Positions 4,991 to 63,572 of a stretch of 64,000 nucleotides of DNA are shown here, piece after piece. The stretch's first letter is position 1. Each line of letters opens with the position of its first letter. The position numbers and the translations under genes were made by a program. Below the pieces are notes generated by a model. The model saw only the letters and a program-made list of their open reading frames with translations, did no database searches and was not told the origin of the DNA. Source of the stretch: Phyllobates terribilis (lineage: Eukaryota); contig NW_027362767.1 in NCBI RefSeq assembly GCF_046119375.1, positions 7,750,001 to 7,814,000 of the forward strand. The letters run 5' to 3'.

Positions 4991-5689
4991 CAGGGCTGAA
5001 GGTGCAGGCAGAGAGGACAGGGCTCTGTTCACATGGAACAGATTGGAAAATACAGAAAGATGGCTAGAACACAGGAGGTAGATACGGAGGAAGGGAAAAG
5101 GGACAAGCAGAACCAGATACACACAAGGTACTTACAATGAAGTAGCGAGTGGACACTAAACTCACAAACAGAAGTACAGAGACAACGAGTTGGAGTTAGG
5201 TGCAGGTTCAGACACTGCAGGAAGAGGGAAGGTACAAACATAGAAACAAACAGGTAACAGACTAGGAGACAGTTCAGACAGGAACTGATACTGCAACGAG
5301 ATACAGGAACGAGCCTGAGTATACAGCCCCCAGAGTGGCAGAAACAGACTAGAAGTCACAGGTAACAGGCCTGGGTATACAGCCCCCAGGGTGGCGGAAA
5401 CAGACTAGAAGTCACAGATACAGGTAACAGGCCTGGGTATGCGGCCCCCAGGGTGGCAGAAACAGACAAGAAGCAGAACAAGACCTGGCAACTCAGAGGC
5501 AAGGAGCACACCGATAGTTAGTATTGCTCAGGCACCTCCTTCTGGGTGGAGGGGGTTTAAATATCCAGTGACTCACAGCAATAGGCTGGGGACGCATTAG
5601 GAGTGCGCCCACAGCAGCTATAAGAATCAGGAAGTAACCGGGCCGCGATGAGCAGATCGCTTGTATGCAGCAGAAATGCTTATGTTGTA

Positions 5690-10500: not shown

Positions 10501-13500
10501 GCAAGGAGAGAAGGTGAAGAGAAGATGCTGGAGGTAAGAAGGCAAGGAGAGAAGGTGAAGAGAAGATGCGGGAGGTAAGAAGGCAAGGAGAGCAGGTGAA
10601 GAGAAGATGCGGGAGGTAAGAAGGCAAGGAGGGAAGGTGAAGAGGAGATGCGGCAGGTAAGAAGGCAAGGAGAGAAAGTGAAGAGAAGATGCGGGAGGTA
10701 AGAAGGCAAGGAGAGAAGGTGAAGAGAAGATGCGGGAGGTAAGAAGGCAAGGAGAGAAGGTGAAGAGAAGATGCGGGAGGTAAGAAGGCAAGGAGAGAAG
10801 GTGAAGAGAAGATGCGGGAGGTAAGAAGGCAAGGAGAGAAGGTGAAGAGAAGATGCGGGAGGTAAGAAGGCAAGGAGAGAAGGTGAAGAGAAGATGCGGG
10901 AGGTAAGAAGGCAAGGAGAGAAGGTGAAGAGAAGATGCGGGAGGTAAGAAGGCAAGGAGAGAAGGTGAAGAGACGGTGCGGGAGGTAAGAAGGCAAGGAG
11001 AGAAGGCGAAGAGAAGGTGCGGGAGGTAAGAATGCAACGAGAGAAGGCGAAGAGAAGATGCGGGAGGTAAGAAGGCAAGGAGAGAAGGTGAAGAGAAGAT
11101 GCGGGAGGTAAGGCAAGGAGAGAAGGTGAAGAGAAGGTGCGGGAGGTAAGAAGGCAAGGAGAGAAGGTGAAGAGAAGGTGCGGGAGGTAAGAAGGCAAGG
11201 AGAGAAGGTGAAGAGAAGGTGCGGGAGGTAAGAAGGCAAGGAGAGAAGGTGAAGAGAAGGTGCGGGAGGTAAGAATGCAACGAGAGAAGGTGAAGAGAAG
11301 ATGCGGAAGGTAAGAAGGCAAGGAGAGAAGGTGAAGAGAAGATGCGGGAGGTAAGAAGGCAAGGAGAGAAGGTGAAGAGAAGATGCTGGAGGTAAGAAGG
11401 CAAGGAGAGAAGGTGAAGAGAAGATGCGGGAGGTAAGAAGGCAAGGAGAGCAGGTGAAGAGAAGATGCGGGAGGTAAGAAGGCAAGGAGGGAAGGTGAAG
11501 AGGAGATGCGGCAGGTAAGAAGGCAAGGAGAGAAAGTGAAGAGAAGATGCGGGAGGTAAGAAGGCAAGGAGAGAAGGTGAAGAGAAGATGCGGGAGGTAA
11601 GAAGGCAAGGAGAGAAGGTGAAGAGAAGATGCGGGAGGTAAGAAGGCAAGGAGAGAAGGTGAAGAGAAGATGCGGGAGGTAAGAAGGCAAGGAGAGAAGG
11701 TGAAGAGAAGATGCGGGAGGTAAGAAGGCAAGGAGAGAAGGTGAAGAGAAGATGCGGGAGGTAAGAAGGCAAGGAGAGAAGGTGAAGAGAAGATGCGGGA
11801 GGTAAGAAGGCAAGGAGAGAAGGTGAAGAGACGGTGCGGGAGGTAAGAAGGCAAGGAGAGAAGGCGAAGAGAAGGTGCGGGAGGTAAGAATGCAACGAGA
11901 GAAGGCGAAGAGAAGATGCGGGAGGTAAGAAGGCAAGGAGAGAAGGTGAAGAGAAGATGCGGGAGGTAAGGCAAGGAGAGAAGGTGAAGAGAAGGTGCGG
12001 GAGGTAAGAAGGCAAGGAGAGAAGGTGCGGGAGATAAGAAGGCAAGGAGAGAAGGTGAAGAGAAGGTGCGGGAGATAAGAAGGCAAGGAGAGAAGGTGAA
12101 GAGGAGATGCGGGAGGTAAGAAGGCAAGGAGAGAAGGTGAAGAGGAGATGCGGGAGGTAAGAAGGCAAGGAGAGAAGGTGAAGAGAAGATGCGGGAGGTA
12201 AGAAGGCAAGGAGAGAAGGTGAAGAGACGGTGCGGGAGGTAAGAAGGCAAGGAGAAAAGGTGAAGAGAAGGTGCGGGAGGTAAGAAGGCAAGGAGAGAAG
12301 GTGAAGAGAAGGTGCAGGAGGTAAGAAGGCAAGGAGAGAAGGTGAAGAGAAGGTGCGGGAGGTAAGAAGGCAAGGAGAGAAGGTGAAGAGAAGGTGCGGG
12401 AGGTAAGAATGCAACGAGAGAAGGTGAAGAGAAGATGCGGAAGGTAAGAAGGCAAGGAGAGAAGGTGAAGAGAAGATGCGGGAGGTAAGAAGGCAAGGAG
12501 AGAAGGTGAAGAGAAGATGCTGGAGGTAAGAAGGCAAGGAGAGAAGGTGAAGAGAAGATGCGGGAGGTAAGAAGGCAAGGAGAGCAGGTGAAGAGAAGAT
12601 GCGGGAGGTAAGAAGGCAAGGAGGGAAGGTGAAGAGGAGATGCGGCAGGTAAGAAGGCAAGGAGAGAAAGTGAAGAGAAGATGCGGGAGGTAAGAAGGCA
12701 AGGAGAGAAGGTGAAGAGAAGATGCGGGAGATAAGAAGGCAAGGGCAGAAGGTGAAGAGAAGATGCGGGAGGTAAGAAGGCAAGGAGAGAAGGTGAAGAG
12801 AAGATGCGGGAGGTAAGAAGGCAAGGAGAGAAGGTGAAGAGAAGATGCGGGAGGTAAGAAGGCAAGGAGAGAAGGTGAAGAGAAGATGCGGGAGGTAAGA
12901 AGGCAAGGAGAGAAGGTGAAGAGAAGATGCGGGAGGTAAGAAGGCAAGGAGAGAAGGTGAAGAGACGGTGCGGGAGGTAAGAAGGCAAGGAGAGAAGGTG
13001 AAGAGACGGTGCGGGAGGTAAGAAGGCAAGGAGAGAAGGTGAAGAGACGGTGCGGGAGGTAAGAAGGCAAGGAGAGAAGGTGAAGAGAAGGTGCGGGAGG
13101 TAAGAAGGCAAGGAGAGAAGGTGAAGAAAAGATGCGGAAGGTAAGAAGGCAAGGAGAGAAGGTGAAGAGAAGATGCGGGAGGTAAGAAGGCAAGGAGAGA
13201 AGGTGAAGAGAAGATGCGGGAGGTAAGAAGGCAAGGAGAGAAGGTGAAGAGAAGATGCGGGAGGTAAGAAGGCAAGGAGAGAAGGTGAAGAAAAGATGCG
13301 GGAGGTAAGAAGGCAAGGAGAGAAGGTGAAGAGAAGATGCGGGAGGTAAGAAGGCAAGGAGAGAAGGTGAAGAGAAGATGCGGGAGGTAAGAAGGCAAGG
13401 AGAGAAGGTGAAGAGAAGATGCGGGAGGTAAGAAGGCAAGGAGAGAAGGTGAAGAGAAGATGCGGGAGGTAAGAAGGCAAGGAGAGAAGGTGAAGAGGAG

Positions 13501-16023
13501 ATGCGGCAGGTAAGAAGGCAAGGAGAGAAAGTGAAGAAAAGATGCGGGAGGTAAGAAGGCAAGGAGAGAAGGTGAAGAAAAGATGCGGGAGGTAAGAAGG
13601 CAAGGAGAGAAGGTGAAGAGAAGATGCGGGAGGTAAGAAGGCAAGGAGAGAAGGTGAAGAGAAGATGCGGGAGGTAAGAAGGCAAGGAGAGAAGGTGAAG
13701 AGAAGATGCGGGAGGTAAGAAGGCAAGGAGAGAAGGTGAAGAGAAGATGCGGGAGGTAAGAAGGCAAGGAGAGAAGGTGAAGAGAAGATGCGGGAGGTAA
13801 GAAGGCAAGGAGAGAAGGTGAAGAGAAGATGCGGGAGGTAAGAAGGCAAGGAGAGAAGGTGAAGAGAAGATGCGGGAGGTAAGAAGGCAAGGAGAGAAGG
13901 TGAAGAAAAGATGCGGGAGGTAAGAAGGCAAGGAGAGAAGGTGAAGAGAAGATGCGGGAGGTAAGAAGGCAAGGAGAGAAGGTGAAGAGAAGATGCGGGA
14001 GGTAAGAAGGCAAGGAGAGAAGGTGAAGAGAAGATGCGGGAGGTAAGAAGGCAAGGAGAGAAGGTGAAGAGGAGATGCGGGAGGTAAGAAGGCAAGGAGA
14101 GAAGGTGAAGAGGAGATGTGGGAGGTAAGAAGGCAAGGAGAGAAAGTGAAGAAAAGATGCGGGAGGTAAGAAGGCAAGGAGAGAAGGTGAAGAAAAGATG
14201 CGGGAGGTAAGAAGGCAAGGAGAGAAGGTGAAGAGAAGATGCGGGAGGTAAGAAGGCAAGGAGAGAAGGTGAAGAGAAGATGCGGGAGGTAAGAAGGCAA
14301 GGAGAGAAGGTGAAGAGAAGATGCGGGAGGTAAGAAGGCAAGGAGAGAAGGTGAAGAGAAGATGCGGGAGGTAAGAAGGCAAGGAGAGAAGGTGAAGAGA
14401 AGATGCGGGAGGTAAGAAGGCAAGGAGAGAAGGTGAAGAGAAGATGCGGGAGGTAAGAAGGCAAGGAGAGAAGGTGAAGAGACGGTGCGGGAGGTAAGAA
14501 GGCAAGGAGAGAAGGTGAAGAGACGGTGCGGGAGGTAAGAAGGCAAGGAGAGAAGGTGAATAGAAAATGCGGGAGGTAAGAAGGCAAGGAGAGAAGGTGA
14601 AGAGAAGATGCGTTAGGCAAGAAGGCAAGGAGAGAAGGTGAAGAGAAGATGCGGGAGGTAAGAAGGCAAGGAGAGAAGGTGAAGAGAAGGTGAAGAGAAG
14701 ATGCGTTAGGCAAGAAGGCAAGGAGAGAAGGTGAAGAGAAGATGCGTTAGGCAAGAAGGCAAGGAGAGAGAGGGGGCGGCTGACCTGGGGCAGTGGGGAC
14801 GTTCGATCCCTCTTCTTGTGCAGATACGGCTCTAGATCAGTTCCTTTGGCTCGGGCCTTGGAGGAGTCAAACACTTTCCTTCTGGAGCTGTGTGTCTTCT
14901 GGCATACCGCAGCATGCTTCTGCAGACGATGTGCCATAAAGCGTCGGCCACACAGCTGACATTGGACGAGCGGCTGGCCCGGGTTCTGAGGGAAGTTTCC
15001 TTGGAGCAATATCTCCTCATCCAGGAGACCAGATGATGGAAGTCCCATGTCCTGCACCCTAGGAGCCTCCAGTGTGAGCTGATGAAATGTGTCTTCAACT
15101 TGTGTGACCGCAGGATGGCCCGAGCCTCTGCCTCCATGAGACTGCTGACGGGACTCTACTATTGAGAGGCTGCTATCCTCCTCAGCCTTCATCCTGCCCC
15201 AGCTGTACTGGTTTATGGAGTGGGCACTGTGCCTGGTGGCCGGCTCCCTGCTTCCACTATACTGGTCTATGGAAAGGTGACTATCTTTTATGGCCCTCTC
15301 CCTGCCCCCCCTGTACTGATCTATAGAGAGGGGGTTGTTGTTTGTGACCTTCTCTGTTCTGTCTTTGGTGGCCCTCTTCCTGCCTCCGCCGTCTCCTTCC
15401 TCCAGTTTGGTTCTTCTAGACCTCGTCTTGGTGTCTTGGATCTCTCGGGCCTTCCTTTCCTCCCATTCTGATTCTTCCTTTTCCTTCTGGATGCGCCGCA
15501 GTTCTTCCTCTGTTCTGCGCAGCTTTTCTCGCAGTAACGCCTCTTTCCTGCGGATTTCAGCCTCCAGATTCATCTCACGTTTCTCCAGTTCTTGCCATTG
15601 GTCAGGGCGACTTGGTCCCGACTTGGAGCGGACATGTGGCAGTGAGGGCTTGATGCTGGCAGCACTGGCTGATGGACAGCGGGGTACTTTGGGATGACTG
15701 TGAGGATACACGGGCTTTAGCAGGTGCGCCCTGTCCACACCTGCTGTCCTTTTCGCCACGGTCCAGTTAGAAGCCCAGGCCTTCTCCTCTAGAGGCTGCT
15801 GGGTTCTGGAGCCGGTGATCCGCTGGGAGATGCGCTCTTGTTGCTGCGTCAGAAGTTTTAGCATTTTCTGCTCTTTCTCCTGCAGCGCTCGCTCCTGGTA
15901 TTCATTCTTTAACAGCTCCAGTTTAGAGGGAAGGAGGGGACCTTGTCTTGGACGGAGGGGCGACAGCTGACATTCACCCCGGCCCTCAGCAGACGTGAAG
16001 GAAGCCAGCGATAGTCTCGCCAT
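7249..16023 (-). CDS. ZC2HC1C: Zinc finger C2HC domain-containing protein 1C, 2 coding exons, 496 aa
   Basis: Exons 16023-14785 (413 codons, donor CAG|GTCAGC) and 7500-7249 (acceptor TTTTCTCAG|). Two C2HC fingers (CQLCGRRFMAHRLQKHAAVC; CPHCSRRFAPRAAERHIPKC) and WRQKHESFLRTIRQAR match recalled human ZC2HC1C. Synteny with ACYP1/MLH3/EIF2B2 agrees. Confidence 0.92.
7570..14765. repeat. 41-bp polypurine minisatellite, about 175 copies, filling the ZC2HC1C coding intron
   Basis: Unit GAAGGCAAGGAGAGAAGGTGAAGAGAAGATGCGGGAGGTAA; 36 of 41 bases are purines on +. Confidence 0.97.
14785..16023 (-). CDS. ZC2HC1C: ZC2HC1C first coding exon
   Basis: Acceptor TTCCTTCCAG|G ATG (exon starts 16024). Contains AGVDRAHLLKP, a coiled coil and the first C2HC finger; 1239 bp, phase 0. 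Confidence 0.9.
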
Positions 16024-16109: not shown

Positions 16110-17113
16110 ACGCCCTGGGACCCGGCTCCACGCTACACGGCCGCCTCCCCGGGACCCGGCTCCACGCTACGCGGGCCGCCTCCCCGGGACCCGGCTCCAC
16201 GCTACACGGCCGCCTCCCCGGGACCCATCTCCACGCTACACGGCCGCCTCCCCGGGACCCATCTCCACGCTACACGGCCGCCTCCCCGGGACCCGGCTCC
16301 ACGCTACGCGGGCCGGCACCCGGCTCCACGCTACGCGGGCCGGCACCCCGGCACTAGGCTCCACGGGCCGCCTCCTCGGCACCCGACTCCACGGGCCGCC
16401 TCCATGGGACCCGGCTCCACGCTACAAGGGCCGCCAACCCCCCGGGACCCGGCTCCACACTACACGGGCCGCCTCCCACCAGGGACCCGGCTCCACACTA
16501 CACGGGCCGCCAACCCCCCGGGACCCGGCTCCACACTACACGGGCCGCCAACCCCCCGGTACCCGGCTCCACACTACACGGGCCGCCTCCCACCCGGGAC
16601 CCGGCTCCACACTACACGGGCCGCCAACCCCCCGGTACCCGGCTCCACACTACACGGGCCGCCTCCCACCCGGGACCCGGCTCCACACTACACGGGCCGC
16701 CAACCCCCCGGGACCCGGCTCCACACTACACGGGCCGCCAACCCCCCGGGACCCGGCTCCACACTACACGGGCCGCCAACCCCCCGGGACCCGGCTCCAC
16801 ACTACACGGGCCGCCAACCCCCCGGGACCCGGCTCCACACTACACGGGCCGCCAACCCCCCGGGACACGGCTCCACACTACACGGGCCGCCTCCCACCAG
16901 GGACCCGGCTCCACACTACACGGGCCGCCAACCCCCCGGGACCCGGCTCCACACTACACGGGCCGCCAACCCCCCGGGACCCGGCTCCACACTACACGGG
17001 CCGCCAACCCCCCGGGACACGGCTCCACACTACACGGGCCGCCTCCCACCAGGGACCCGGCTCCACACTACACGGGCCGCCAACCCCCCGGGACCCGGCT
17101 CCACACTACACGG
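16110..17113. repeat. GC-rich 32-38-bp minisatellite in the ZC2HC1C 5'UTR intron
   Basis: Unit CCGGGACCCGGCTCCACACTACACGGGCCGCCAACCCC. Confidence 0.95.
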
Positions 17114-17160
17114 GTCCCCGAACACATGCTGGCTATCTGGGGGGCCCTTACCGCACTCAC

Positions 17161-17326
17161 TTGGGGCCACAGGACCGCTGCTCTCGCACTTCACTGCTCA
17201 GTTTTGTTGTGCTCGTTGCTAGGCAGCGAAGCGACGTGACGTCAGAGAAGGGCTGACGCTGATGGCATCATCATTAAGCGCCTACCGATCAGCTCTGTAG
17301 TCATAGGAACGGCTGGAGATCTGCAG
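17161..17326. promoter_or_regulatory. Shared bidirectional promoter with probable non-coding first exons of ZC2HC1C (-, donor after 17161) and ACYP1 (+, donor after 17326)
   Basis: The only unique, CpG-containing stretch between two head-to-head genes. Minus donor CCAA|GTGAGT, plus donor CAG|GTGTGT, palindromic CRE TGACGTCA (17237-17244), RFX X-box-like GTTGCTAGGCAGC (17215-17227). TSSs are inferred. Confidence 0.6.
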
Positions 17327-17393
17327 GTGTGTGACCGGGAACCGCGTCTGTGAGCGGGGGAATGATAGGACTGCGGTATCATATACTGTACAA

Positions 17394-19495
17394 CCCCCCC
17401 CCCACCCTCTGTGCGAGGAGGACAACCCCACCCCTCTGTACGAGGAGGACAACCCCACCCCCCTGTACGAGGAGGACAACCCCACCCCCCTGTACGAGGA
17501 GGACAGTCGCCCCCCCCCACCCTCTGTACGAGGAGGACAGTCGCCCCCCACCCTCTGTACGAGGAGGACAGTCGCCCCCCCCACCCTCTGTACGAGGAGG
17601 ACAGTCGCCCCCCCCACCCTCTGTACGAGGAGGACAGTCGCCCCCCCCACCCTCTGTACGAGGAGGACAGTCGCCCCCCCCACCCTCTGTACGAGGAGGA
17701 CAGTCGCCCCCCCACCCTCTGTACGAGGAGGACAGTCGCCCCCCCCACCCTCTGTACGAGGTGGACAGTCGCCCCCCCCACCCTCTGTACGAGGTGGACA
17801 GTCGCCCCCCCACCCTCTGTACGAGGAGGACAGTCGCCCCCCCCACCCTCTGTACGAGGTGGACAGTCGCCCCCCCCACCCTCTGTACGAGGTGGACAGT
17901 CGCCCCCCCCACCCTCTGTACGAGGTGGACAGTCGCCCCCCCCCACCCTCTGTACGAGGAGGACAACCCCACCCCCCTGTACGAGGAGGACAGTCGCCCC
18001 CCCACCCTCTGTACGAGGAGGACAGTCGCCCCCCCCCACCCTCTGTACGAGGAGGACAGTCGCCCCCCCACCCTCTGTACGAGGAGGACAGTCGCCCCCC
18101 CCACCCTCTGTACGAGGAGGACAGTCGCCCCCCCCACCCTCTGTACGAGGAGGACAGTCACCCCCCCACCCTCTGTACGAGGAGGACAGTCGCCCCCCCC
18201 ACCCTCTGTACGAGGAGGACAGTCGCCCCCCCCACCCTCTGTACGAGGAGGACAGTCGCCCCCCCCACCCTCTGTACGAGGAGGACAGTCGCCCCCCCCA
18301 CCCTCTGTACGAGGAGGACAGTCGCCCCCCCCACCCTCTGTACGAGGAGGACAGTCGCCCCCCCCACCCTCTGTACGAGGAGGACAGTCGACCCCCCACC
18401 ATCTGTACGAGGAGGACAGTCGCCCCCCCACCCTCTGTACGAGGTGGACAGTCGCCCCCCCCACCCTCTGTACGAGGAGGACAGTCGCCCCCCCACCCTC
18501 TGTACGAGGAGGACAGTCGCCCCCCCCACCCTCTGTACGAGGTGGACAGTCGCCCCCCCCCACCCTCTGTACGAGGAGGACAGTCGCCCCCCCTACCCCC
18601 TGCACTAGGAGGAGAACAGTCGCCCCCCCACCCCCTGCACGGGATAGGACAACTTCCCCCCCCGTACGAGGAGAACAGTCACCCACCCCCTGCACGGGGA
18701 GGACAACTCCCCCCCCCCCCCCCCCTCTGTACGAGGAGGACAGTCGCCCCCCCCCCCTCTGTACGAGGAGGACAGTCGCCCCCCCCTACCCTCTGTACGA
18801 GGAGGACAGTCGCCCCCCCCTACCCTCTGTACGAGGAGGACAGTCGCCCCCCCCTACCCTCTGTACGAGGAGGACAGTCGCCCCCCCCTACCCTCTGTAC
18901 GAGGAGGACAGTCGCCCCCCCCTACCCTCTGTACGAGGAGGACAGTCGCCCCCCCCTACCCTCTGTACGAGGAGGACAGTCGCCCCCCCCACCCTCTGTA
19001 CGAGGAGGACAGTCGCCCCCCCCACCCTCTGTACGAGGAGGACAGTCGCCCCCCCCACCCTCTGTACGAGGAGGACAGTCGCCCCCCCCCCACCCTCTGT
19101 ACGAGGAGGACAGTCGCCCCCCCCACCCCCTGTACGAGGAGGACAGTCACCCCCCCCACCCTCTGTACGAGGAGGACAGTCGCCCCCCACACCCTCTGTA
19201 CGAGGAGGACAGTCGCCCCCCCCCACCCTCTGTACGAGGAGGACAGTCGCCCCCCCCACCCTCTGTACGAGGAGGACAGTCGCCCCCCCCCCACCCTCTG
19301 TACGAGGAGGACAGTCGCCCCCCCCACCCTCTGTACGAGGAGGACAGTCACCCCCCCCCACCCTCTGTACGAGGAGGACAGTCACCCCCCCCACCCTCTG
19401 TACTAGGAGGACAGTCGCCCCCCCCACCCTCTGTACTAGGAGGACAGTCGCCCCCCCACCCTCTGTACTAGGAGGACAGTTGCCCCCCCGTCCCA
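17394..19495. repeat. ~29-33-bp C-rich minisatellite in probable ACYP1 intron 1
   Basis: Unit C(6-9)ACCCTCTGTACGAGGAGGACAGTCG, about 65 copies. Confidence 0.95.
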
Positions 19496-19528
19496 TTGTA
19501 CAATGAGGACAGCCCACCTTTCAGCGTT

Positions 19529-23243: not shown

Positions 23244-36088
<12,845 letters not shown>

Positions 36089-36131: not shown

Positions 36132-49759
<13,628 letters not shown>

Positions 49760-51793: not shown

Positions 51794-53382
51794 CACTACC
51801 GTTCAAAAGTTTGGGGTCACCCAGACAATTTTGTGTTTTCCATGATACTTTTATTTATCAAATGAGTTGCAAAATGAATAGAAAATATCATCCAGACATT
51901 GAGAAGGTTAGAAATAATGATTTTTATTAGAAAGAATAATTTTCTCCTTCACACTTTGCTTTGGTCACAGAATGCTCCTTTGCAGCAATTCCAGCATTGC
52001 AGACCTTTGGCATTCTAGCTGTTAATTTGCTGAGGTCATCTTGAGACATTTCCCCCCATGCTTCCTGAAGCCCCTCCACAAGTTGGATTGGCTTGATGGG
52101 CACTTTTTGCACCATACGGTCAAGCTGCTCCCACAACAGCTCAATGGGGTTGAGATCTGGTGACTGCGCTGGCCGCTCCATTACAGATAGAATACCAGCT
52201 GCCTGCTTCTTCCCTAAATAGTTCAGGCATAATTTGGAGGTGTGCTTTGGGTCATTGTCCAGTTGTGAGATGAAATTGGCTCCAATCAAGCACTGTGCAC
52301 AGGGTATGGCATGGCGTTGCAAAATGGAGTGATAGCCTTCCTTATTCAAAATCCCATTTACCTTGTACAAATCTCCCACTTTACCAGCACCAAAGCAACC
52401 CCAGACCATCACATTACCTCCACCATGCTTGACAGATGGCGTCAGGCACTCTTCCAGCATCTTTTCAGTTGTTCTGCGTCTCACAAATGTTCTTCTGTGT
52501 GATCCAAACACCTCAAACTTTGATTCGCCTGTCCATAAAACTTTTTTCCAATCTTCCTCTGTCCAATGTCTGTGTTCTTTTGCCCATATTAATCTTTTCC
52601 TTTTATTAGCCAGTCTCAGATATGGCTTTTTCTTTGTCCTGAAGGCCAGCATCCCGGAGTCGCCTCTTCACTGTAGACGTTGACACTGGCGTTTTGCGTG
52701 TACTATTTAATGAAGCTGCCAGTTGAGGAGCTGTGAGGCGTCGATTTCTCACACTAGAGACTCTAATGTCCTTGTCTTGTTGCTCAGTTGTGCAGCGGGG
52801 TCTCCCACTTCTCTTTCTACTCTGGTTAGAGCCTGTTTGTGCTCTCCTCTGAAGGGAGTAGTACACACCGTTGTAGGAAATCTTCAGTTTCTTGGCAATT
52901 TCTCGTATGGAATAAGCCTTCATTTCTAAGAACAAGAATAGACTGTCGAGTTTCACATGAAAGTTCTCTTTTTCTGGCCATTTTGAGAGTTTCATAGAAC
53001 AAACAAATGTAATGCTCCAGATTCTCAACTAGCTCAAAGGAAAGTCAATGTTATAGCTTCTCAAATCAGCCAAACCATTTTCAGCTGGGATAACATACTT
53101 GTGCAAGGGTTTTATAAACATCCATTAGCTTCTTACACAGTTAGCAAACACAATGTACCATTAAAACACTGGAGTGGTGGTTGTTGGAAATGGGCCTCTA
53201 TACACCTATGCAGATATTGCAATAAAAACAAGACGTTTGCAGCTAGAATAGTCATTTACCACATTAACAATGTATAGAGTGTATTTCTGATTCATTTAAT
53301 GTTAGCTTCATTGAAAAAAAATGGGCTTTTCTTTCAAAAATAATAAAACTTCTAAATGACCCCAAACTTTTGAACGGTAGTG
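51794..53382 (-). mobile_element. Full-length Tc1 transposon (1589 bp), frameshifted transposase
   Basis: TIRs CACTACCGTTCAAAAGTTTGG / CCAAACTTTTGAACGGTAGTG; ORFs 53028-52606 and 52652-51927 with KHGGGNVMVWGCF, DNDPKHT and SPDLNPIELLW. Confidence 0.95.
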
Positions 53383-56240: not shown

Positions 56241-56804
56241 AGCTGCTTTTTACTTCCAGTCCGGTACCGGTTCCAGTCTCCATCTGAAAATGATCATTAT
56301 CACCTGATATAATCGGTCACTCATTCACCGGAGCAAGTCCGGATCCTCACATCAATGTCACAGTCTGAATACGGATCATGAGGTGCAGACGGCCCTCGGC
56401 CGCTCCATGAGCCTGCAAATCCGGCCTCAGTGTAAGTACACCCGAAGAAGTGATCACCGGACACTGATGATGGAGGAGACCGGCGGGCACCAAATAATGA
56501 TGATGGAGAGGACGGGCGGTCACCAGATACTGATGATGGAGGGGACGGGCGGTCACCAGATACTGAAGATGGAAGCGACGGGCGGTCACCAGATACTGAT
56601 GATGGAGGAGACGAGTGTCACCAGATACTGATGATGGAGGCGACGGGTGGTCACCAGATACTGATGATAGGGGACGGGTGGTCACCAGATACTGATGATG
56701 GAGGAGACCAGCGGACACCAGATACTGATGATGGAGGTGACGGGCGGTCACCAGATACTGATGATGGAGGCGATGGGCGGTCACCAGATACTGATGATGG
56801 AGAG

Positions 56805-58019
56805 TGTAGCACCCTGAGGATTCGGCTGCTACAGGGGTATTGCACCTCAACCCAGAGGTGTGGTATTCCACTCCCGGGTAAGGATGGAGTGTGGAACTGA
56901 GCTCAGTTAGCTGCATGCACTACACACATCCCATTTCCGAGGAACAGACCGATGGTACTCCCACTAGAGAAATGTGCAGGTACGACAGTGTCTGTTCCTG
57001 GCTGGAGTGGGAGGGGGGTGGAACATCCCAGTAGTGTAGGGGCAGATAGGGGGAGCAGTCTGGGTAGTGCTAGGAGCTCATTGGGTGCTGGTCACCTGAG
57101 CTCACACATAGAGGGAGTATATAAGGTGGGCACCATCTTAGGACAGGGTCTTTTGCAGAGTGAGGTCAGTCTGTCAGTCTTTGTAGAGGAAGAGAGCAGA
57201 GGAGAAGAGCAGCTCCAAGGCCAAGAGAAAGAGAGAGGAGAAAGAAAGACCCAGAGGGGGAGAAAGAAGGAACTCCAAGAGCCCAAATTAGATCAGAGGG
57301 TGAAGAGTTGGCAACAGGGTACCGGATCCCAAGCTGGCAGAGGCTACAGCACACCTTAGCCAGGAACCGGAGGTCGTGGGCAGGATCTGCCACGACCACC
57401 CACTAAATCCACCCGGAAGGCAGACCAGGAATAGGGTCAGGGAACCCAGAGACAAGGGTTTACCACCAAGAGGCCCGAGGGAGCCGGACATAGGTGGATC
57501 CCTGGTGGGGAAGGCCAGAGAAGAGGACAGGACAGAAAGGGAGCTCAGGACCACGCTCCAGAATCACCTGGGGGTTGGCCGAGTCCAGGACCTGGTGGAC
57601 GCAGCACGGCTCGGGTGGTCACTTAAGGCCGGAGTGACCAGAACAACTGCAGTAAGTAAACAAACCCTGAACTGCACAGCCCGACTCTGCGTCTCATTTC
57701 CATCCTCGCTGCACCACCACAACCCCCATCCTCTGCAACTGACCCCCTGAGGCTATACCCCTCCCGTTGGGGGTTATACTACCTAAGCTGCACATACATC
57801 ACCAGCCTCAGTGGACCCTGCTGCAGCGGCGGCCGTACTGACCGCAATTCAACGGGTGGCGTAGTCGACACAAAAGAACATCTAGTAACATCATAAGGAC
57901 TGCCACACACTGAGCTTGACACCCTGGGCACGGACCGGGTCACAGCCACTCGGAGACTACAACCCCCATCTGATCCGGCTCCGGGTATCCCTAACAGCAC
58001 TGGCCCAGGGGGCGCGTCA
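56805..58019 (+). repeat. 5' LTR (1215 bp)
   Basis: TGTAGCACCC...GGCGCGTCA; TATATAA at 57118-57124; AGTAAA at 57655-57660. Confidence 0.93.
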
Positions 58020-58023
58020 ACTT

Positions 58024-58041
58024 TGGCGTAGTCGGCAGGAT
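58024..58041 (+). other. Primer-binding site complementary to the tRNA-Ser 3' end
   Basis: TGGCGTAGTCGGCAGGAT is the reverse complement of AUCCUGCCGACUACGCCA, the 3' 18 nt of vertebrate tRNA-Ser(AGA/TGA) (recalled); it starts 5 nt after the LTR end. Confidence 0.85.
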
Positions 58042-58189
58042 AACGTGCCCGCAACAACCGGGTACTGCGTGCCTGAAGAAAAGTTCACCGTTACCTTAAA
58101 AAGAAGTCTCCTGCCGGTTCCGGAGGGTCCCCGCCATCGGGCCCCATCACAGGTCGTTGCCCGCCATCTGCAGCTTTTTCCCGCCATCC

Positions 58190-59950
58190 ATGGAGTTTCC
58201 CGCCACTGGGAGACGATTCCCGCCATTTCCAAGGATTTCCCGCCTTGGGGGAGCGGACGCCATTATGGGCGTGCCAGAGGGTGGCAAGAGGCCACCTCCC
58301 ATCGTGGGCCAGGTCGAAGAATGGCGCCAAAAGCGGAAACCGCGCCCACCAACAGAGACTGTGATGCTGGAAGTGTCCATCAGCGTGAGAGAACTGCCCC
58401 TGGAACTGAAGTTGCCCCGGGACCACCCTCGATGTGGGCGGAGACAGAAGAAGAGAGCAAAGATGGGTGTCGCCTGGAGCAGTCTGGAGAGAGCGCACCC
58501 GGAGACAAGACGTCTGGAAGAGAGTCCAGAGAGAGCCTACCCGGAGATGGAGGGAGAGTCAGGCAGCACCGACCCAGTGGTCAGGAGCCTGTTGCAGGTC
58601 GCCACTCCAGAAGGCCTGCTGGAGATCCTAACACAGCTCCCCCGAGACCGGGAGTGTGCACAGACCGCGCTGGAGGGCCTCGCACAGAGGTTGGCCCGGG
58701 TGCAACGAGAGACGTTGGCGGAGTGGAGCCGAGAGATGGCCCAGCAGATCGAGACTCGTCAGCGGAGCACGCCACCCGAGACGAGGAGACAGACCGCCTC
58801 TGAGGATGGCGCAGGAGGACTGAAGGCCGGAGACGGCGCCGAGAAGGGAGCCGAACGAATGGAGGCAGGTAAAGGGGACGTCACTACCCCGAGCCGGGAA
58901 ACCGCGTGCCTGCCCCAGCTCCCCGTCGCAGAGCCCGAAATTCCCCCTGCCGTGCCCGTCGCTGCATCGTCACCGCCGCCGACTAGGCCTCAACCGGAAA
59001 CCGCGGCCGCGACCCCTGTGACGTCACACGCCTCGACCTCGAGCGTGGCCAAGCAGGAAATACCACCGGCCTGGTCGCAAGGCCTAGTACCCCCGGGCGC
59101 CGCAATACCAACAGCGCCCCCTACCTCCGCGGAGCCACCGGCCTGGTCGCAGGGCCGAATAACCCAGGGCGCCGCCGTTCTTACGGTGCCCTTTGCCTTT
59201 AAGGTGCCCCAGGCCTGGTCGCAAGGCCTGGTTAACCCGGGCGCCGCTACCATCAACGCGCCCTCAGCATCTAGAGTGCCGCACCTGGGTGAAGATCTAT
59301 TCGCCCAGCATACGTGCCCGGATGGGCAGCCCTTTGTATGGCCCCAGGAGTACATTCAGCTGGAACTCCAGAGAGCAAGGCCCATGTGCGAGCCCCTGAT
59401 TCCGGCTCCGAAGCCTGTAAAGAGGACCTCGCCCCCGCTGGAGGAGGCACAGTTTGAGTGGGACCCCACTGGAGAAGACCTCATGGGGTTCACTCAGGAG
59501 ACTCGGGCGGCCGCAGCAGAGCGTGCAGAGTGCTGCCGGCAGCAGCTCGAGGTCTTCGAGAAGGAGCGGAGAGAGAGGCGGGTCCGGGAACAGCAAGCAC
59601 AGATAAGGAGCGCGGAGCAGAAGAGCCGGACCAGGAGGAATCCCCGTGCAGCTCATGGTCCCCCTTCCACCGGGACTGTGATAAAATTCAACATGCAGCA
59701 CGGATGGGGCTTTATCAGAGACCATCATACCCCCGGCGACGTCTTTGTGACCCGCAGAGACGTAGAAAGCCATCTGCCGGAGGGACACAGAGGTCGTGAC
59801 CTTTACCTGGGTGATGAGGTCACCTTCACCCGGCACAAGTGTGCCAAAGGACCCTACGCCCTCCATGTGCATCGCCTGACGGAGGAGGAGCAAGAGGACC
59901 CAGACGGGTCTGAAGAACCTAAAGAAGGAGCAGGAGGACGCCGTCGTTGA
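58190..59950 (+). CDS. 586-aa protein of the LTR element with a C-terminal cold-shock domain (59669-59878)
   Basis: Uninterrupted ORF from the first ATG (58190). TGTVIKFNMQHGWGFI..DVFVT..GDEVTF..KGPYALHV aligns by eye with the CSD consensus GTVKWFN.KGFGFI..DVFVH..GQ.VEF..KGP.A.NV. No Gag, RT or IN motifs recognised. Confidence 0.85.
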   Translation: MEFPATGRRFPPFPRISRLGGADAIMGVPEGGKRPPPIVGQVEEWRQKRKPRPPTETVMLEVSISVRELPLELKLPRDHPRCGRRQKKRAKMGVAWSSLERAHPETRRLEESPERAYPEMEGESGSTDPVVRSLLQVATPEGLLEILTQLPRDRECAQTALEGLAQRLARVQRETLAEWSREMAQQIETRQRSTPPETRRQTASEDGAGGLKAGDGAEKGAERMEAGKGDVTTPSRETACLPQLPVAEPEIPPAVPVAASSPPPTRPQPETAAATPVTSHASTSSVAKQEIPPAWSQGLVPPGAAIPTAPPTSAEPPAWSQGRITQGAAVLTVPFAFKVPQAWSQGLVNPGAATINAPSASRVPHLGEDLFAQHTCPDGQPFVWPQEYIQLELQRARPMCEPLIPAPKPVKRTSPPLEEAQFEWDPTGEDLMGFTQETRAAAAERAECCRQQLEVFEKERRERRVREQQAQIRSAEQKSRTRRNPRAAHGPPSTGTVIKFNMQHGWGFIRDHHTPGDVFVTRRDVESHLPEGHRGRDLYLGDEVTFTRHKCAKGPYALHVHRLTEEEQEDPDGSEEPKEGAGGRRR

Positions 59951-60429
59951 AGTACGGTAGAGAGAGACTGTATAAAGTTGTCCGTCGGGGTACCAGGAAC
60001 TGTTACTTATTTAAAATATGTTCCCCGTTGGGACCAGCCAAGAGTGAACTGTTAACCCCGTGTGTCCCTATTCCCACTGACCGAGGACTGAGAGCGGTCA
60101 ATCCTCCCTAATACCTGGCCGAGGACTGAGAGCGGCCATATTTCCCTTGTATATAGTTGCGCTTCCTAAAGCGCCCCCTACCGGTTTTATAGGGAACTGT
60201 TTTATTCCAAGAGAGACTGTCGCACTTTACCCGGTCACAAGTTGCACCGTGACCGGAGGAACCAGAGACAGGAATGTTTACAAAAATGTTATTTATATGA
60301 AAAGTTTATTGCTGATAATATATGTGATGTTTTATATGTTTATATGTTGATGTTTTATGAAAAAATTTGTATGTTTTGGATGTTTATATTTTACAGCCCG
60401 AGGACGTGCTGTGATTTACCAGGGGGGAA

Positions 60430-61645
60430 TGTAGCACCCTGAGGATTCGGCTGCTACAGGGGTATTGCACCTCAACCCAGAGGTGTGATATTCCACTCCC
60501 GGGTAAGGATGGAGTGTGGAACTGAGCTCAGTTAGCTGCATGCACTACACACATCCCATTTCCGAGGAACAGACCGATGGTACTCCCACTAGAGAAATGT
60601 GCAGGTACGACAGTGTCTGTTCCTGGCTGGAGTGGGAGGGGGGTGGAACATCCCAGTAGTGTAGGGGCAGATAGGGGGAGCAGTCTGGGTAGTGCTAGGA
60701 GCTCATTGGGTGCTGGTCACCTGAGCTCACACATAGAGGGAGTATATAAGGTGGGCACCATCTTAGGACAGGGTCTTTTGCAGAGTGAGGTCAGTCTGTC
60801 AGTCTTTGTAGAGGAAGAGAGCAGAGGAGAAGAGCAGCTCCAAGGCCAAGAGAAAGAGAGAGGAGAAAGAAAGACCCAGAGGGGGAGAAAGAAGGAACTC
60901 CAAGAGCCCAAATTAGATCAGAGGGTGAAGAGTTGGCAACAGGGTACCGGATCCCAAGCTGGCAGAGGCTACAGCACACCTTAGCCAGGAACCGGAGGTC
61001 GTGGGCAGGATCTGCCACGACCACCCACTAAATCCACCCGGAAGGCAGACCAGGAATAGGGTCAGGGAACCCAGAGACAAGGGTTTACCACCAAGAGGCC
61101 CGAGGGAGCCGGACATAGGTGGATCCCTGGTGGGGAAGGCCAGAGAAGAGGACAGGACAGAAAGGGAGCTCAGGACCACGCTCCAGAATCACCTGGGGGT
61201 TGGCCGAGTCCAGGACCTGGTGGACGCAGCACGGCTCGGGTGGTCACTTAAGGCCGGAGTGACCAGAACAACTGCAGTAAGTAAACAAACCCTGAACTGC
61301 ACAGCCCGACTCTGCGTCTCATTTCCATCCTCGCTGCACCATCACAACCCCCATCCTCTGCAACTGACCCCCTGAGGCTATACCCCTCCCGTTGGGGGTT
61401 ATACTACCTAAGCTGCACATACATCACCAGCCTCAGTGGACCCTGCTGCAGCGGCGGCCGTACTGACCGCAATTCAACGGGTGGCGTAGTCGACACAAAA
61501 GAACATCTAGTAACATCTATACGGACTGCCACACACTGAGCTTGACACCCTGGGCACGGACCGGGTCACAGCCACTCGGAGACTACAACCCCCATCTGAT
61601 CCGGCTCCGGGTATCCCTAACAGCACTGGCCCAGGGGGCGCGTCA
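60430..61645 (+). repeat. 3' LTR (1216 bp)
   Basis: Copy of the 5' LTR at offset 3625, preceded by the PPT. Confidence 0.93.
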
Positions 61646-63572
61646 AGAGGACGGGCGGTCACCAGATACTGATGATGGAGGAGACCGGCGGTCACCAGAT
61701 ACTGATGATGGAGGCAACGGGCGGTCACCAGATACTGATGATGGAGGAGACGGGCGGTCACCAGATACTGATGATGGAGGAGACGGGCGGTCACCAGATA
61801 CTGATGATGGAGGCGACGGGCAGTCACCAGATACTGATGATGGAGGTGATGGGCGGTCACCAGATACTGATGATGGAGGAGACGGGCGGTCACCAGATAC
61901 TGATGATGTAGGAGACGGGCGGTCACCAGATACTGATGATGGAGGAGACGGGCGGTCACCAGATACTGATGATGGAGGGGACGGGCGGTCACCAGATACT
62001 GATGATGGAGGAGACGGGCGGTCACCAGATACTGATGATGGAGGAGACAGGCGGTCACCAGATACTGATGATGGAGGCGACGGGCGGTCACCAGATACTG
62101 ATGATGGAGGCGACGGGCGGTCACCAGATACTGATGATGGAGGTGACGGGTGGTCACCAGATACTGATGATGGAGGCGACAGGCGGTCACCAGATACTGA
62201 TGATGGAGGAGACCGGCGGTCACCAGATACTGATGATGGAGGTGACAGGTGGTCACCAGATACTGATGATGGAGGGGACGGGCGGTCACGAGATACTGAT
62301 GATGGAGGAGACGGGCGGTCACCAGATACTGATGATGGAGGAGACGGGCGGTCACCAGATACTGATGATGGAGGAGACGGGCGGTCACCAGATACTGATG
62401 ATGGAGGAGGCGGGCGGTCACCAGATACTGATGATGGAGGAGACGGGCGGTCACCGTATACTGATGATGGAGGAGACGGGCGGTCACCAGATACTTATGA
62501 TGGAGGTGACAGGTGGTCACCAGATACTGATGATGGAGGCGACGGGCGGTCACCAGATACTGATGATGGAGGAGACGGGCGGTCACCAGATACTGATGAT
62601 GGAGGAGACGGGCGGTCACCGTATACTGATGATGGAGGAGACGGGCGGTCACCAGATACTGATGATGGAGGAGACGGGCGGTCACCAGATACTGATGATG
62701 GAGGAGACGGGCGGTCACCAGATACTGATGATGGAGGAGACGGGCGGTCACCGTATACTGATGATGGAGGAGACGGGCGGTCACCAGATACTGATGATGG
62801 AGGTGACAGGTGGTCACCAGATACTGATGATGGAGGGGACGGACGGTCACGAGATACTGATGATGGAGGAGACGGGCGGTCACCAGATACTGATGATGGA
62901 GGAGACGGGCGGTCACCAGATACTGATGATGGAGGAGACGGGCGGTCACCAGATACTGATGATGGAGGAGACGGGCGGTCACCGTATACTGATGATGGAG
63001 GAGACGGGCGGTCACCAGATACTTATGATGGAGGTGACAGGTGGTCACCAGATACTGATGATGGAGGGGACGGGCGGTCACCAGATACTGATGATGGAGG
63101 AGACGGGCGGTCACCAGATACTGATGATGGAGGAGACGGGCGGTCACCAGATACTGATGATGGAGGAGACGGGCGGTCACCAGATACTGATGATGGAGGT
63201 GACGGGTGGTCACCGTATACTGATGATGGAGGAGACGGGCGGTCACCAGATACTGATGATGGAGGAGACGGGCGGTCACCAGATACTGATGATGGAGGTG
63301 ACGGGCGGTCATCAGATACTGATGATGGAGGTGACGGGCGGTCACCAGATACTGATGATGGAGGCGACGGGCGGTCACCAGATACTGATGATTTACATTT
63401 TTCTTCTCTTCAGTCACCCTTCTGTGTCTGAAGCTTCTGACTGCGCAGCATTTTCTTCTCACCTGCCTAAAACTTGTGCACAGCACTGTATGTAGATAGA
63501 CAAAGGAATATAGGCATATAAGTACACACATACGTACAGCGCTATAGCCGTAACACACGCTATATCTATATA

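Follow-up and report, generated by a model that had tools for sequence, protein, structure and literature searches.

Results

A complete LTR retroelement lies within a minisatellite of Phyllobates terribilis

We analyzed a 64,000-nucleotide stretch of the genome of the golden poison frog Phyllobates terribilis (contig NW_027362767.1; hereafter the window), in which positions 56805-61645 hold a complete long terminal repeat (LTR) retroelement whose sole long sense open reading frame (ORF) encodes a protein that ends in a cold-shock domain (CSD). All stranded features of this element are on the + strand and are given in window coordinates. A self-comparison of the region from 55.5 to 63 kb yielded one long pair of direct repeats, which local alignment placed as a 5′ LTR of 1215 bp (56805-58019) and a 3′ LTR of 1216 bp (60430-61645), both of the form TG...CA, with TGTAGC at the start and GTCA at the end. 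Aligned end to end, the two LTRs differ by three substitutions (56863/60488, 57717/61342 and 57896/61522) and one 1-nt indel; the resulting divergence (K = 0.0025) corresponds to roughly 0.6-1.2 million years at an assumed rate of 1-2 × 10⁻⁹ substitutions per site per year. The LTRs are flanked by a 4-bp target-site duplication (TSD), AGAG (56801-56804 and 61646-61649). Four bases past the 5′ LTR is the primer binding site (PBS) TGGCGTAGTCGGCAGGAT (58024-58041), which is complementary at 18 of 18 positions to the 3′ end of tRNA-Ser(AGA/TGA), with the last 18 nt of the human tRNA-Ser-AGA/TGA as printed in PMC10359600 taken as the reference, and the polypurine tract (PPT) AGGGGGGAA (60421-60429) directly adjoins the 3′ LTR. 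Between these signals the internal region measures 2.4 kb, 1.76 kb of which is the CSD ORF. The ORF is followed by a 3′ untranslated internal region (59951-60420) that is AT-rich towards its end and that holds, just upstream of the PPT, a 17-nt motif, AGCCCGAGGACGTGCTG (60395-60411).

We considered that the LTR pair might be an artefact of the assembly, produced by duplication of a segment amid many repeats, since the surroundings are rich in minisatellites and an assembly gap occurs elsewhere in the window (45370-45497). However, the LTRs differ at four positions, the TSD, PBS and PPT are in their canonical positions, and the same architecture is found in independent copies at other loci and in other species. 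Moreover, the element interrupts a host 33-bp minisatellite identified by Tandem Repeats Finder, of which the left part occupies 56454-56804 (array 56454-56802, the last 4 nt of this part being the 5′ AGAG) and the continuation, including the 3′ AGAG, occupies 61646-63392 (array 61650-63392); when the element and one AGAG are taken out, a 33-nt minisatellite unit is restored. In the face of this evidence, an artefact is scarcely credible. The structural description in the initial annotation of this sequence, comprising the LTRs, the AGAG duplication, the tRNA-Ser PBS, the PPT and the ORF, was confirmed in every item, coordinates included, and its view that the element is young and intact agrees with the four LTR differences, the complete set of cis signals and the open ORF. 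Thus, the element is a recent insertion of a non-autonomous LTR retroelement that resembles endogenous retroviruses (ERVs).

The sole gene encodes a protein with a C-terminal cold-shock domain

The ORF (58190-59950) comprises 586 codons from the first ATG, with the stop included in the span, and is open for 597 codons if counted from a TTG at 58157; an intact orthologous ORF is present in a sister element, L001, described below. We modeled the encoded protein with AlphaFold2 from an 8-sequence family alignment. Most of the model is of low confidence, with a predicted local distance difference test score (pLDDT) below 50 at 347 of 586 residues, and disorder is predicted for ∼60% of the protein. 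Three parts of the model are ordered. An N-terminal helical segment (aa 129-192; 58574-58765; pLDDT 65-84) contains a motif that is kept in three related proteins, P0085, P0003 and P0002. It is followed by a Pro/Ala-rich linker, predicted to be disordered, in which the sequence PPAWSQG or PQAWSQG occurs three times (aa 292, 316 and 340; 59063-59227), then by a long charged helix rich in Glu, Arg and Gln (aa 436-483; 59495-59638; pLDDT 82-93) with a basic stretch after it, and finally by the CSD (aa 492-562; 59663-59875), which is modeled as a five-stranded barrel (pLDDT ∼89) bearing an RNP1 motif, GWGFI, and an RNP2-like motif, VFVT. The model of P0003, a diverged relative, repeats this order, from a helix near the N-terminus through a disordered linker and a long helix (pLDDT 96) to the CSD; the barrel and the long helix are predicted with confidence in both of these diverged members.

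The assignment of the CSD is supported by sequence and by predicted structure. The Pfam CSD family (PF00313) matched aa 494-561 (59669-59872) with 34.2 bits against a cut-off of 27, and it matched relatives with 32.1 and 33.7 bits, while two others scored below the threshold (23.7-24.0 bits). Foldseek searches of the PDB with the predicted barrel returned cold-shock domains only, headed by CspA (TM-score 0.88-0.91) and the YB-1 CSD (0.78-0.82), followed by CRHSP-24, LIN28 and Unr. Thus, the earlier call of a cold-shock domain stands, with PF00313 above its gathering threshold and a predicted barrel of the oligonucleotide/oligosaccharide-binding (OB) type.

To place the domain among known CSDs, we used a profile of the family CSD, which gave its best scores with YB-1 and YBX2 (40.7-38.6 bits), and lower scores with bacterial Csp proteins (36.9 bits or less), LIN28B (23 bits) and CSDE1 (22 bits). 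The alignment of the family CSD to YB-1 and YBX2 is nearly gapless and includes the long β3-β4 loop that is missing from bacterial Csps. Within the family the RNP1 motif GWGFI is kept, and the RNP2 motif VFVH reads VFVT, VFVN or VFVA. Judged by these sequence comparisons, the family CSD appears to be closest to the CSDs of Y-box proteins, and a host gene of the Y-box type is its probable source, through a capture that took place long ago.

Nevertheless, the frog ORF does not encode a Y-box protein, as the match is confined to the CSD. YBX1 and YBX2/FRGY2 are the best-scoring solved CSDs, align nearly without gaps and share RNP1 in the form G(W/Y)GFI, but their CSD lies near the N-terminus, whereas the frog CSD is C-terminal and only ∼30% identical to theirs. 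The frog protein also has neither the Ala/Pro N-domain nor the alternating basic/acidic C-terminal domain of the Y-box proteins, the RNP2 His and the equivalent of Trp65 are replaced, and the tail after the CSD is 25-130 aa long in the family, with no alternating clusters of this kind.

The element has no recognizable gag or pol

We searched for the genes expected of an autonomous element and found no Gag, protease, reverse transcriptase (RT) or integrase by Pfam, by sequence search of the PDB, by comparison with PDB folds or by comparison with predicted viral folds (BFVD). Pfam detected only the CSD in all members of the family, with no Gag, matrix (MA) or capsid (CA) family; Foldseek against the BFVD predicted viral structures detected only CSD and OB proteins, with no Gag; and in NCBIfam the sole matches were to models of bacterial Csp-type proteins and of the retron Se72 effector, with scores that fell far short of the respective cut-offs. 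No member has a CCHC knuckle. A conserved late-domain motif was likewise not found, since the single PTAP, at aa 307, is missing from the sister copy. There is no room for pol, because the internal sequence is only 2.4 kb, and no signal of env was seen either. Thus, these sequence and fold searches bear out the initial annotation, according to which no capsid, protease, RT or integrase is recognizable, and the element is non-autonomous, as it had also proposed, given canonical cis signals with no RT or integrase signal.

These results bear on the possibility that the ORF is a very divergent Gag, and that this is, like BARE-2 or ETn/MusD, a "gag-only" element, in which the helices would assemble the particle, the CSD would replace the zinc-knuckle nucleocapsid (NC), and only Pol would be borrowed. 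The ORF does occupy the gag position, right after the PBS and leader; its RNA-binding module is C-terminal, like NC in Gag; and the helical segments at aa 129-192 and 436-483 are conserved. Gags that are free of zinc knuckles exist in foamy viruses and in Ty1. In contrast, Pfam holds no Gag, MA or CA family that matches, the PDB and BFVD fold searches gave no match to a CA-like two-domain fold (with models that derive from a shallow alignment), late-domain motifs are not conserved, and predicted disorder covers some 60% of the protein. Furthermore, the N-terminal 460 aa have no homolog beyond the closest subfamily, in which P0001 was the sole match in the HMMER search described below. We therefore regard a divergent Gag as unlikely, though worth keeping in mind.

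The element belongs to a recently active family in poison frogs

To find relatives, we used an exhaustive HMMER search of 1.84 × 10⁹ representative proteins (E ≤ 1e-10). Six proteins matched, five of which are proteins of dendrobatoid frogs (P. terribilis, Ranitomeya variabilis, R. imitator and Anomaloglossus baeobatrachus); the sixth, P0006, matched in five separate stretches, like multi-CSD proteins. Word-indexed protein searches had few annotated frog proteins among the matches listed, and the HMMER search was the more informative.

The closest protein relative, P0001, is encoded at locus L001 on another scaffold of the same P. terribilis assembly (GCA_046119375.1). L001 is a complete sister element with 78-82% nucleotide identity to that in the window, 1247-bp LTRs with 0 differences, the TSD ACAA, the same PBS and an intact ORF. 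Since both LTR pairs are identical or nearly so, two subfamilies have been active very recently in one genome. We found two further complete elements in A. baeobatrachus. L003 has 1284-bp TG...CA LTRs with 7 differences, a TSD read as GGCCC, and an internal region of 2.3 kb with the CSD ORF only. L004 has 1150-bp TG...CA LTRs with 2 differences, the TSD TAAA, and a single CSD ORF that is broken by a later, unrelated 4.6-kb nested insertion, downstream of which the annotated product begins. An older, rearranged copy in R. variabilis, L002, has LTR remnants that are 95.6% identical and has lost part of its 5′ LTR, with the ORF still open. BLAST searches revealed no further copies in the window or in the four 21-kb frog loci.

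The complete copies share LTRs of ∼1.2 kb with TG...CA ends, a tRNA-Ser PBS, the 17-nt motif and an interior of 2.3-3 kb with a single ORF. The PBS of the Anomaloglossus elements, TGGCGTCACGAACAGGAT, has its last 17 nt complementary to the 3′ fragment of tRNA-Ser-CGA, for which a 17-nt sequence is available (PMC9659620); thus, serine priming is conserved despite the use of a different isodecoder. Between the lineages, blastn aligned only the junctions of the unique 5′ region (U5) with the PBS and of the PPT with the unique 3′ region (U3), and the 17-nt motif AGCCCGAGGACGTGCTG is invariant in four of four complete elements (window, L001, L003 and L004) although the remainder no longer aligns by blastn. 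This conservation of only the cis signals for RT and integrase, with divergence of the rest, points to shared or related helper machinery. A 4-bp TSD is present in three of four copies, which would fit class I (gamma/epsilon-like) ERVs, although with no RT the family has no place on a tree; class I ERVs are reported to be the youngest LTR class in Dendrobates tinctorius (PMC11152451).

Thus, we conclude that the family is spread across the poison frogs (Dendrobatoidea) and is both long-lived and recently active. The recent activity had been suggested from the window element, and it is borne out by the LTR differences in the other copies (0/1247 in L001, 2/1150 in L004 and 7/1284 in L003).

Further copies are found as pieces of CSD elements within chimeric gene models of P. 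terribilis and R. imitator, P0083 (where the piece forms the N-terminus of an "R3HCC1" model), P0085 (with a Harbinger-type DDE transposase) and P0086 (with a MADF protein). These fusions could have arisen in annotation, or they could reflect genuine chimeric transcripts driven by an LTR. More distant CSD proteins, P0048 (Bufo bufo, "YBX2-A-like") and P0084 (L054:384-1436), both carry the signature FVxRRSVKRxYLP, and on the basis of this similarity such genes may form a clade that extends more widely among anurans. We did not count L054, a Logan contig of 2.4 kb, as a member of the family, as it has no LTR, PBS or 17-mer. The nested insertion in L004 (5367-9983) is flanked by a perfect 263-bp duplication (5104-5366 = 9984-10246) and is joined in frame to an ORF of 1142 aa that contains the motifs YIDD and GIY...YVG; it has no Pfam or PDB sequence match, and by these motifs it may be Penelope-like.

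The cold-shock gene is under purifying selection

We compared the ORFs of the window element and L001, representing the two P. terribilis subfamilies, using four methods (NG86, LWL85, YN00 and maximum likelihood) to obtain the ratio of nonsynonymous to synonymous divergence (omega). Omega was 0.27-0.30 for the whole ORF by the four methods (NG86 bootstrap 0.20-0.34), 0.23-0.25 for aa 92-586, and 0.05-0.09 for the CSD. Thus, omega is not near 1, and the initial proposal that the CSD gene is under purifying selection holds, most strikingly in the CSD itself. Likewise, in comparisons of the deeper lineages, the synonymous differences (pS) in the CSD are saturated, and the nonsynonymous differences (pN) are only 0.28-0.38.

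The first part of the ORF behaved differently. In codons 1-91 (58190-58462), omega was 0.66-0.84, with a synonymous divergence (dS) of only ∼0.19, and the substitutions relative to the sister subfamily are spread evenly over the three codon positions, yet the indels are in frame. The first ATG of the window ORF is not kept in L001, whereas Met26, Met59 and Met92 are kept. From Met92, which has an A at −3 and a G at +4, an excess of third-position changes is seen onwards, and the best-supported coding part is therefore aa 92-586 (58463-59950). From this pattern, the robustly selected coding sequence appears to start at Met92 (58463), and codons 1-91 may belong to the leader, constrained at the nucleotide level as RNA or DNA, and may in addition be translated. 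Thus, of the initial claim of a 586-aa ORF under selection, the selection stands, while the full length is probably overstated.

These analyses also address whether the ORF is simply a passenger, that is, a host gene fragment that was transduced once and is functionless for the element, or one of which some copies are domesticated host genes. Several copies are annotated in RefSeq as ordinary "uncharacterized protein" genes, and L002 keeps an open ORF despite the partial loss of its 5′ LTR. However, the low omega in the CSD was measured between two mobile subfamilies, the layout of the element is kept across lineages in which synonymous sites are saturated, and the copies with near-identical LTRs all have an intact ORF, with the partial exception of L004 and its later nested insertion. 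We consider a passenger ORF very improbable.

A possible role of the cold-shock protein in mobilization

We hold the structural and evolutionary statement, that is, the anatomy of the element, the family and the selection on its gene, with high confidence. On balance, we also favor, with more modest confidence, an explanation that combines a non-autonomous family with a CSD protein that serves the element's own RNA and a helper that acts in trans. For the way in which the protein would do so, a role as a packaging adaptor is a serious candidate that we place just short of probable. According to this mechanism, the CSD protein would bind the RNA of its own element, possibly via the conserved leader, and would stabilize this RNA, chaperone it and serve as its packaging adaptor, standing in for Gag/NC or L1 ORF1p. 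The element RNA would then be delivered into particles built by an autonomous retrovirus-like helper, whose RT would use the tRNA-Ser primer site and the polypurine tract, and whose integrase would make the 4-bp duplication. That an element should bring its own CSD protein is plausible, since HIV replication is known to use host YB-1 as a cofactor (PMC6040738).

The leader has one feature that could be relevant to such binding. A repeat of ∼20 nt with the core CCCGCCA(T) occurs in six tandem-like copies (58130-58245), from the leader into the start of the ORF, and it is kept in L001 (9274-9419). It holds four CAUC motifs and several CGCCAT cores, and CAUC motifs are bound by the CSD of YB-1 (PMC3458536). 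The leaders of L003 and L004 have only 1-2 GCCGCCAT. The repeat might be a protein-binding array at the level of RNA or DNA, and we treat the CAUC motifs in it as a lead, not a result.

A bolder proposal, about which we are doubtful, is that the family represents a "chaperone-only" class of LTR elements, in which Gag was long ago replaced by a Y-box-type CSD protein that recognizes the CAUC leader, such that the element out-competes the helper genome for packaging. If true, this class would be the LTR counterpart of the ORF1p strategy, with a host RNA chaperone domain in the nucleocapsid role.

Several observations weigh against a CSD protein that serves the element's RNA with a helper in trans. 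No autonomous helper was found in a scan of IMG/VR with the 17-mer or in JGI metagenomes with a longer pattern, and mobilization in trans is proposed only from the absent RT and integrase and the canonical cis signals. The advantage of YB-1 over bacterial Csp in the profile scores is only ∼4-5 bits. The base-stacking Trp65 of YB-1 is replaced by Lys or Val in the family and the His of VFVH by Thr, Asn or Ala; since RNP1 is kept but these two positions are replaced, nucleic-acid binding is plausible, not assured. The folding energy of the leader is no better than that of shuffled sequence (z = 0.07), and comparison of the leader with Rfam gave nothing at E ≤ 1. Finally, the structure predictions derive from 8-10 sequences, and with alignments this shallow a divergent assembly domain could be missed.

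In the scans for a helper, the 17-mer had 49 matches in IMG/VR, on 49 contigs (L005-L053), which were uninspected and which we treated as chance. The longer pattern, consisting of the 17-mer, the PPT and the start of the LTR, matched nothing in the JGI metagenomes.

The protein might instead be a host-directed accessory, which would boost translation or stability of the element's mRNA, mask this mRNA within mRNPs of germ cells, or interfere with Y-box-dependent or RNA-silencing defenses of the host. Purifying selection does show that the protein benefits the element, and its CSD is of the Y-box type, a type of protein known to package and mask mRNA (PMC7226217). Moreover, CSDs were also acquired, more than once, by bird ERVs already equipped with gag and pol (PMC12287698), which argues for a benefit beyond replacement of NC. 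The results obtained here do not separate this explanation from the packaging model, but the charged-island domain found at the C-terminus of Y-box proteins is missing from the frog protein, and on the whole we find a host-directed role improbable. The roles suggested in the initial annotation, as a nucleocapsid substitute, in packaging into oocyte mRNPs or in countering host defense, are candidates only.

Comparison with known retroelements

Capture of a CSD by a vertebrate retroelement has a precedent, in that 46 bird ERVs from two major ERV groups encode CSDs, which were captured several times and whose repeated capture was argued to mean adaptive value (PMC12287698, Mol Biol Evol 2025). 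Like the frog family, these are vertebrate ERV-type elements with an acquired PF00313 domain. Unlike the frog family, they were identified via RT and thus carry pol, and the position of their CSD varies; in the frogs no gene other than that of the CSD protein is present, and the lineage has lasted and diversified across the Dendrobatoidea without pol. We identified no bird proteins among the matches to the frog profile, although most of the weaker matches were not looked up and this absence is not firm. The poison-frog genome papers, as far as they could be searched, contain no description of a family of CSD elements. Thus, the novelty suggested in the initial annotation is reduced with respect to the CSD cargo, for which the bird ERVs are a precedent, and survives with respect to a pol-less lineage with only a CSD gene, which was not found in the searchable literature. 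Together with the captures in bird ERVs, the frog family suggests that CSDs are a recurrent adaptive acquisition of vertebrate retroelements.

Among non-autonomous LTR elements, BARE-2 of plants, ETn/MusD of mouse, the mammalian MaLR, LARD, TRIM and VL30 resemble the frog family in having a complete set of LTRs, PBS and PPT without RT and integrase, in depending on a helper, and in that they can be young and numerous. However, the ORF retained by BARE-2, ETn/MusD and MaLR is recognizably derived from gag, whereas the frog ORF has no detectable homology to Gag and ends in a host-type CSD; we see no sign of a gag-only element in the frog family. LARD, TRIM and VL30 have no conserved ORF; the frog element does have one, maintained by purifying selection, and so belongs with neither LARD nor TRIM. 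Transducing retroviruses that carry v-onc genes are also flanked by LTRs, lack pol and env, contain a coding segment derived from the host and need a helper, but they are short-lived somatic products. The frog element is unlike them because it belongs to a long-lived germline lineage with deeply diverged sublineages and a cargo under purifying selection. As a functional analog, LINE-1 ORF1p likewise joins a helical or coiled segment to an RNA-binding domain and coats and chaperones its own RNA; it has an RRM plus CTD fold, belongs to another class of element and has no homology to the frog protein, such that we draw the analogy by inference.

Non-autonomous LTR elements are usually viewed as reduced parasites, left with cis signals alone or, at most, with a remnant of gag. 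In the frog family, strong constraint has instead preserved an RNA-binding gene that is of host type rather than Gag, and copies whose LTRs are nearly identical occur in three lineages (two P. terribilis subfamilies and two Anomaloglossus copies). It thereby offers a tractable natural system in which to ask how a parasite of a retrovirus gets its RNA chosen for packaging, and whether a cold-shock domain can do the job of nucleocapsid. The family also matters for annotation of the very large genomes of poison frogs, in which copies are now listed as "uncharacterized" host genes or are fused into chimeric models (R3HCC1, Harbinger-type transposase and MADF).

Further features of the LTRs

The LTR contains a TATA-like box, TATATAAG (57118-57125), which is kept in the sister subfamily (L001:8254); a promoter role can be proposed from its sequence, in which case it probably marks a boundary between U3 and the repeat region (R) ∼25-30 nt downstream. 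AGTAAA (57655-57660) is the sole hexamer in the LTR that resembles a poly(A) signal and is kept at L001:8810, consistent with a putative role of this kind. In U5, ∼165 nt upstream of the real PBS, the 5′ half of that site occurs once more, as the 11-nt sequence TGGCGTAGTCG (57857-57867), which recurs in the 3′ LTR (61482-61492) and in both LTRs of L001 (9009-9019 and 12855-12865); the window holds three matches to this sequence, compared to 0.02 expected.

Divergence between the two P. terribilis subfamilies is uneven along the LTR. The first ∼300 bp of U3 (56805-57102 compared to L001:7941-8240) are mostly 97-98% identical, with one 100-bp stretch at 87%, while the middle of the LTR is only 73-80% identical and dS in the ORF is ∼0.6-0.8. 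As far as the alignments go, the high identity in U3 suggests either recent recombination between the subfamilies or strong constraint on the promoter.

Genomic surroundings in the window

A MutL-type ORF (23244-26243, + strand) encodes 1000 aa in a single exon, with a MutL-type ATPase and a DNA_mis_repair domain, contains a 93-bp tandem repeat (8.7 copies; 24625-25428), and is followed by a MutL_C exon in the annotation of the assembly; it looks like the large exon of MLH3. Its translation is recorded, with every residue identical, in the P. terribilis assembly GCA_046119375.1. An ORF fragment on the − strand (36135-36767) matches the IF-2B family (an eIF2B subunit or MRI1-like) and, from this match, is probably an exon of a host gene. 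Given these two, the element sits in a region that is genic but rich in minisatellites. Long minisatellite arrays occur in the window at unusual density (7577-14769, 16406-19512, 28359-33211, 40255-41325 and 44600-47671), with periods of 30-71 bp, lengths of up to 7 kb and a strong strand skew; the array at 7577-14769 consists of 177 copies of a 41-bp purine-rich unit. Other mobile elements are represented by an ORF with an RVT_1 reverse-transcriptase domain (140-2002, + strand), which begins 140 nt from the left edge of the window, and by fragments of Tc1/mariner-type transposases on the − strand (48153-48848 and 51930-52652).

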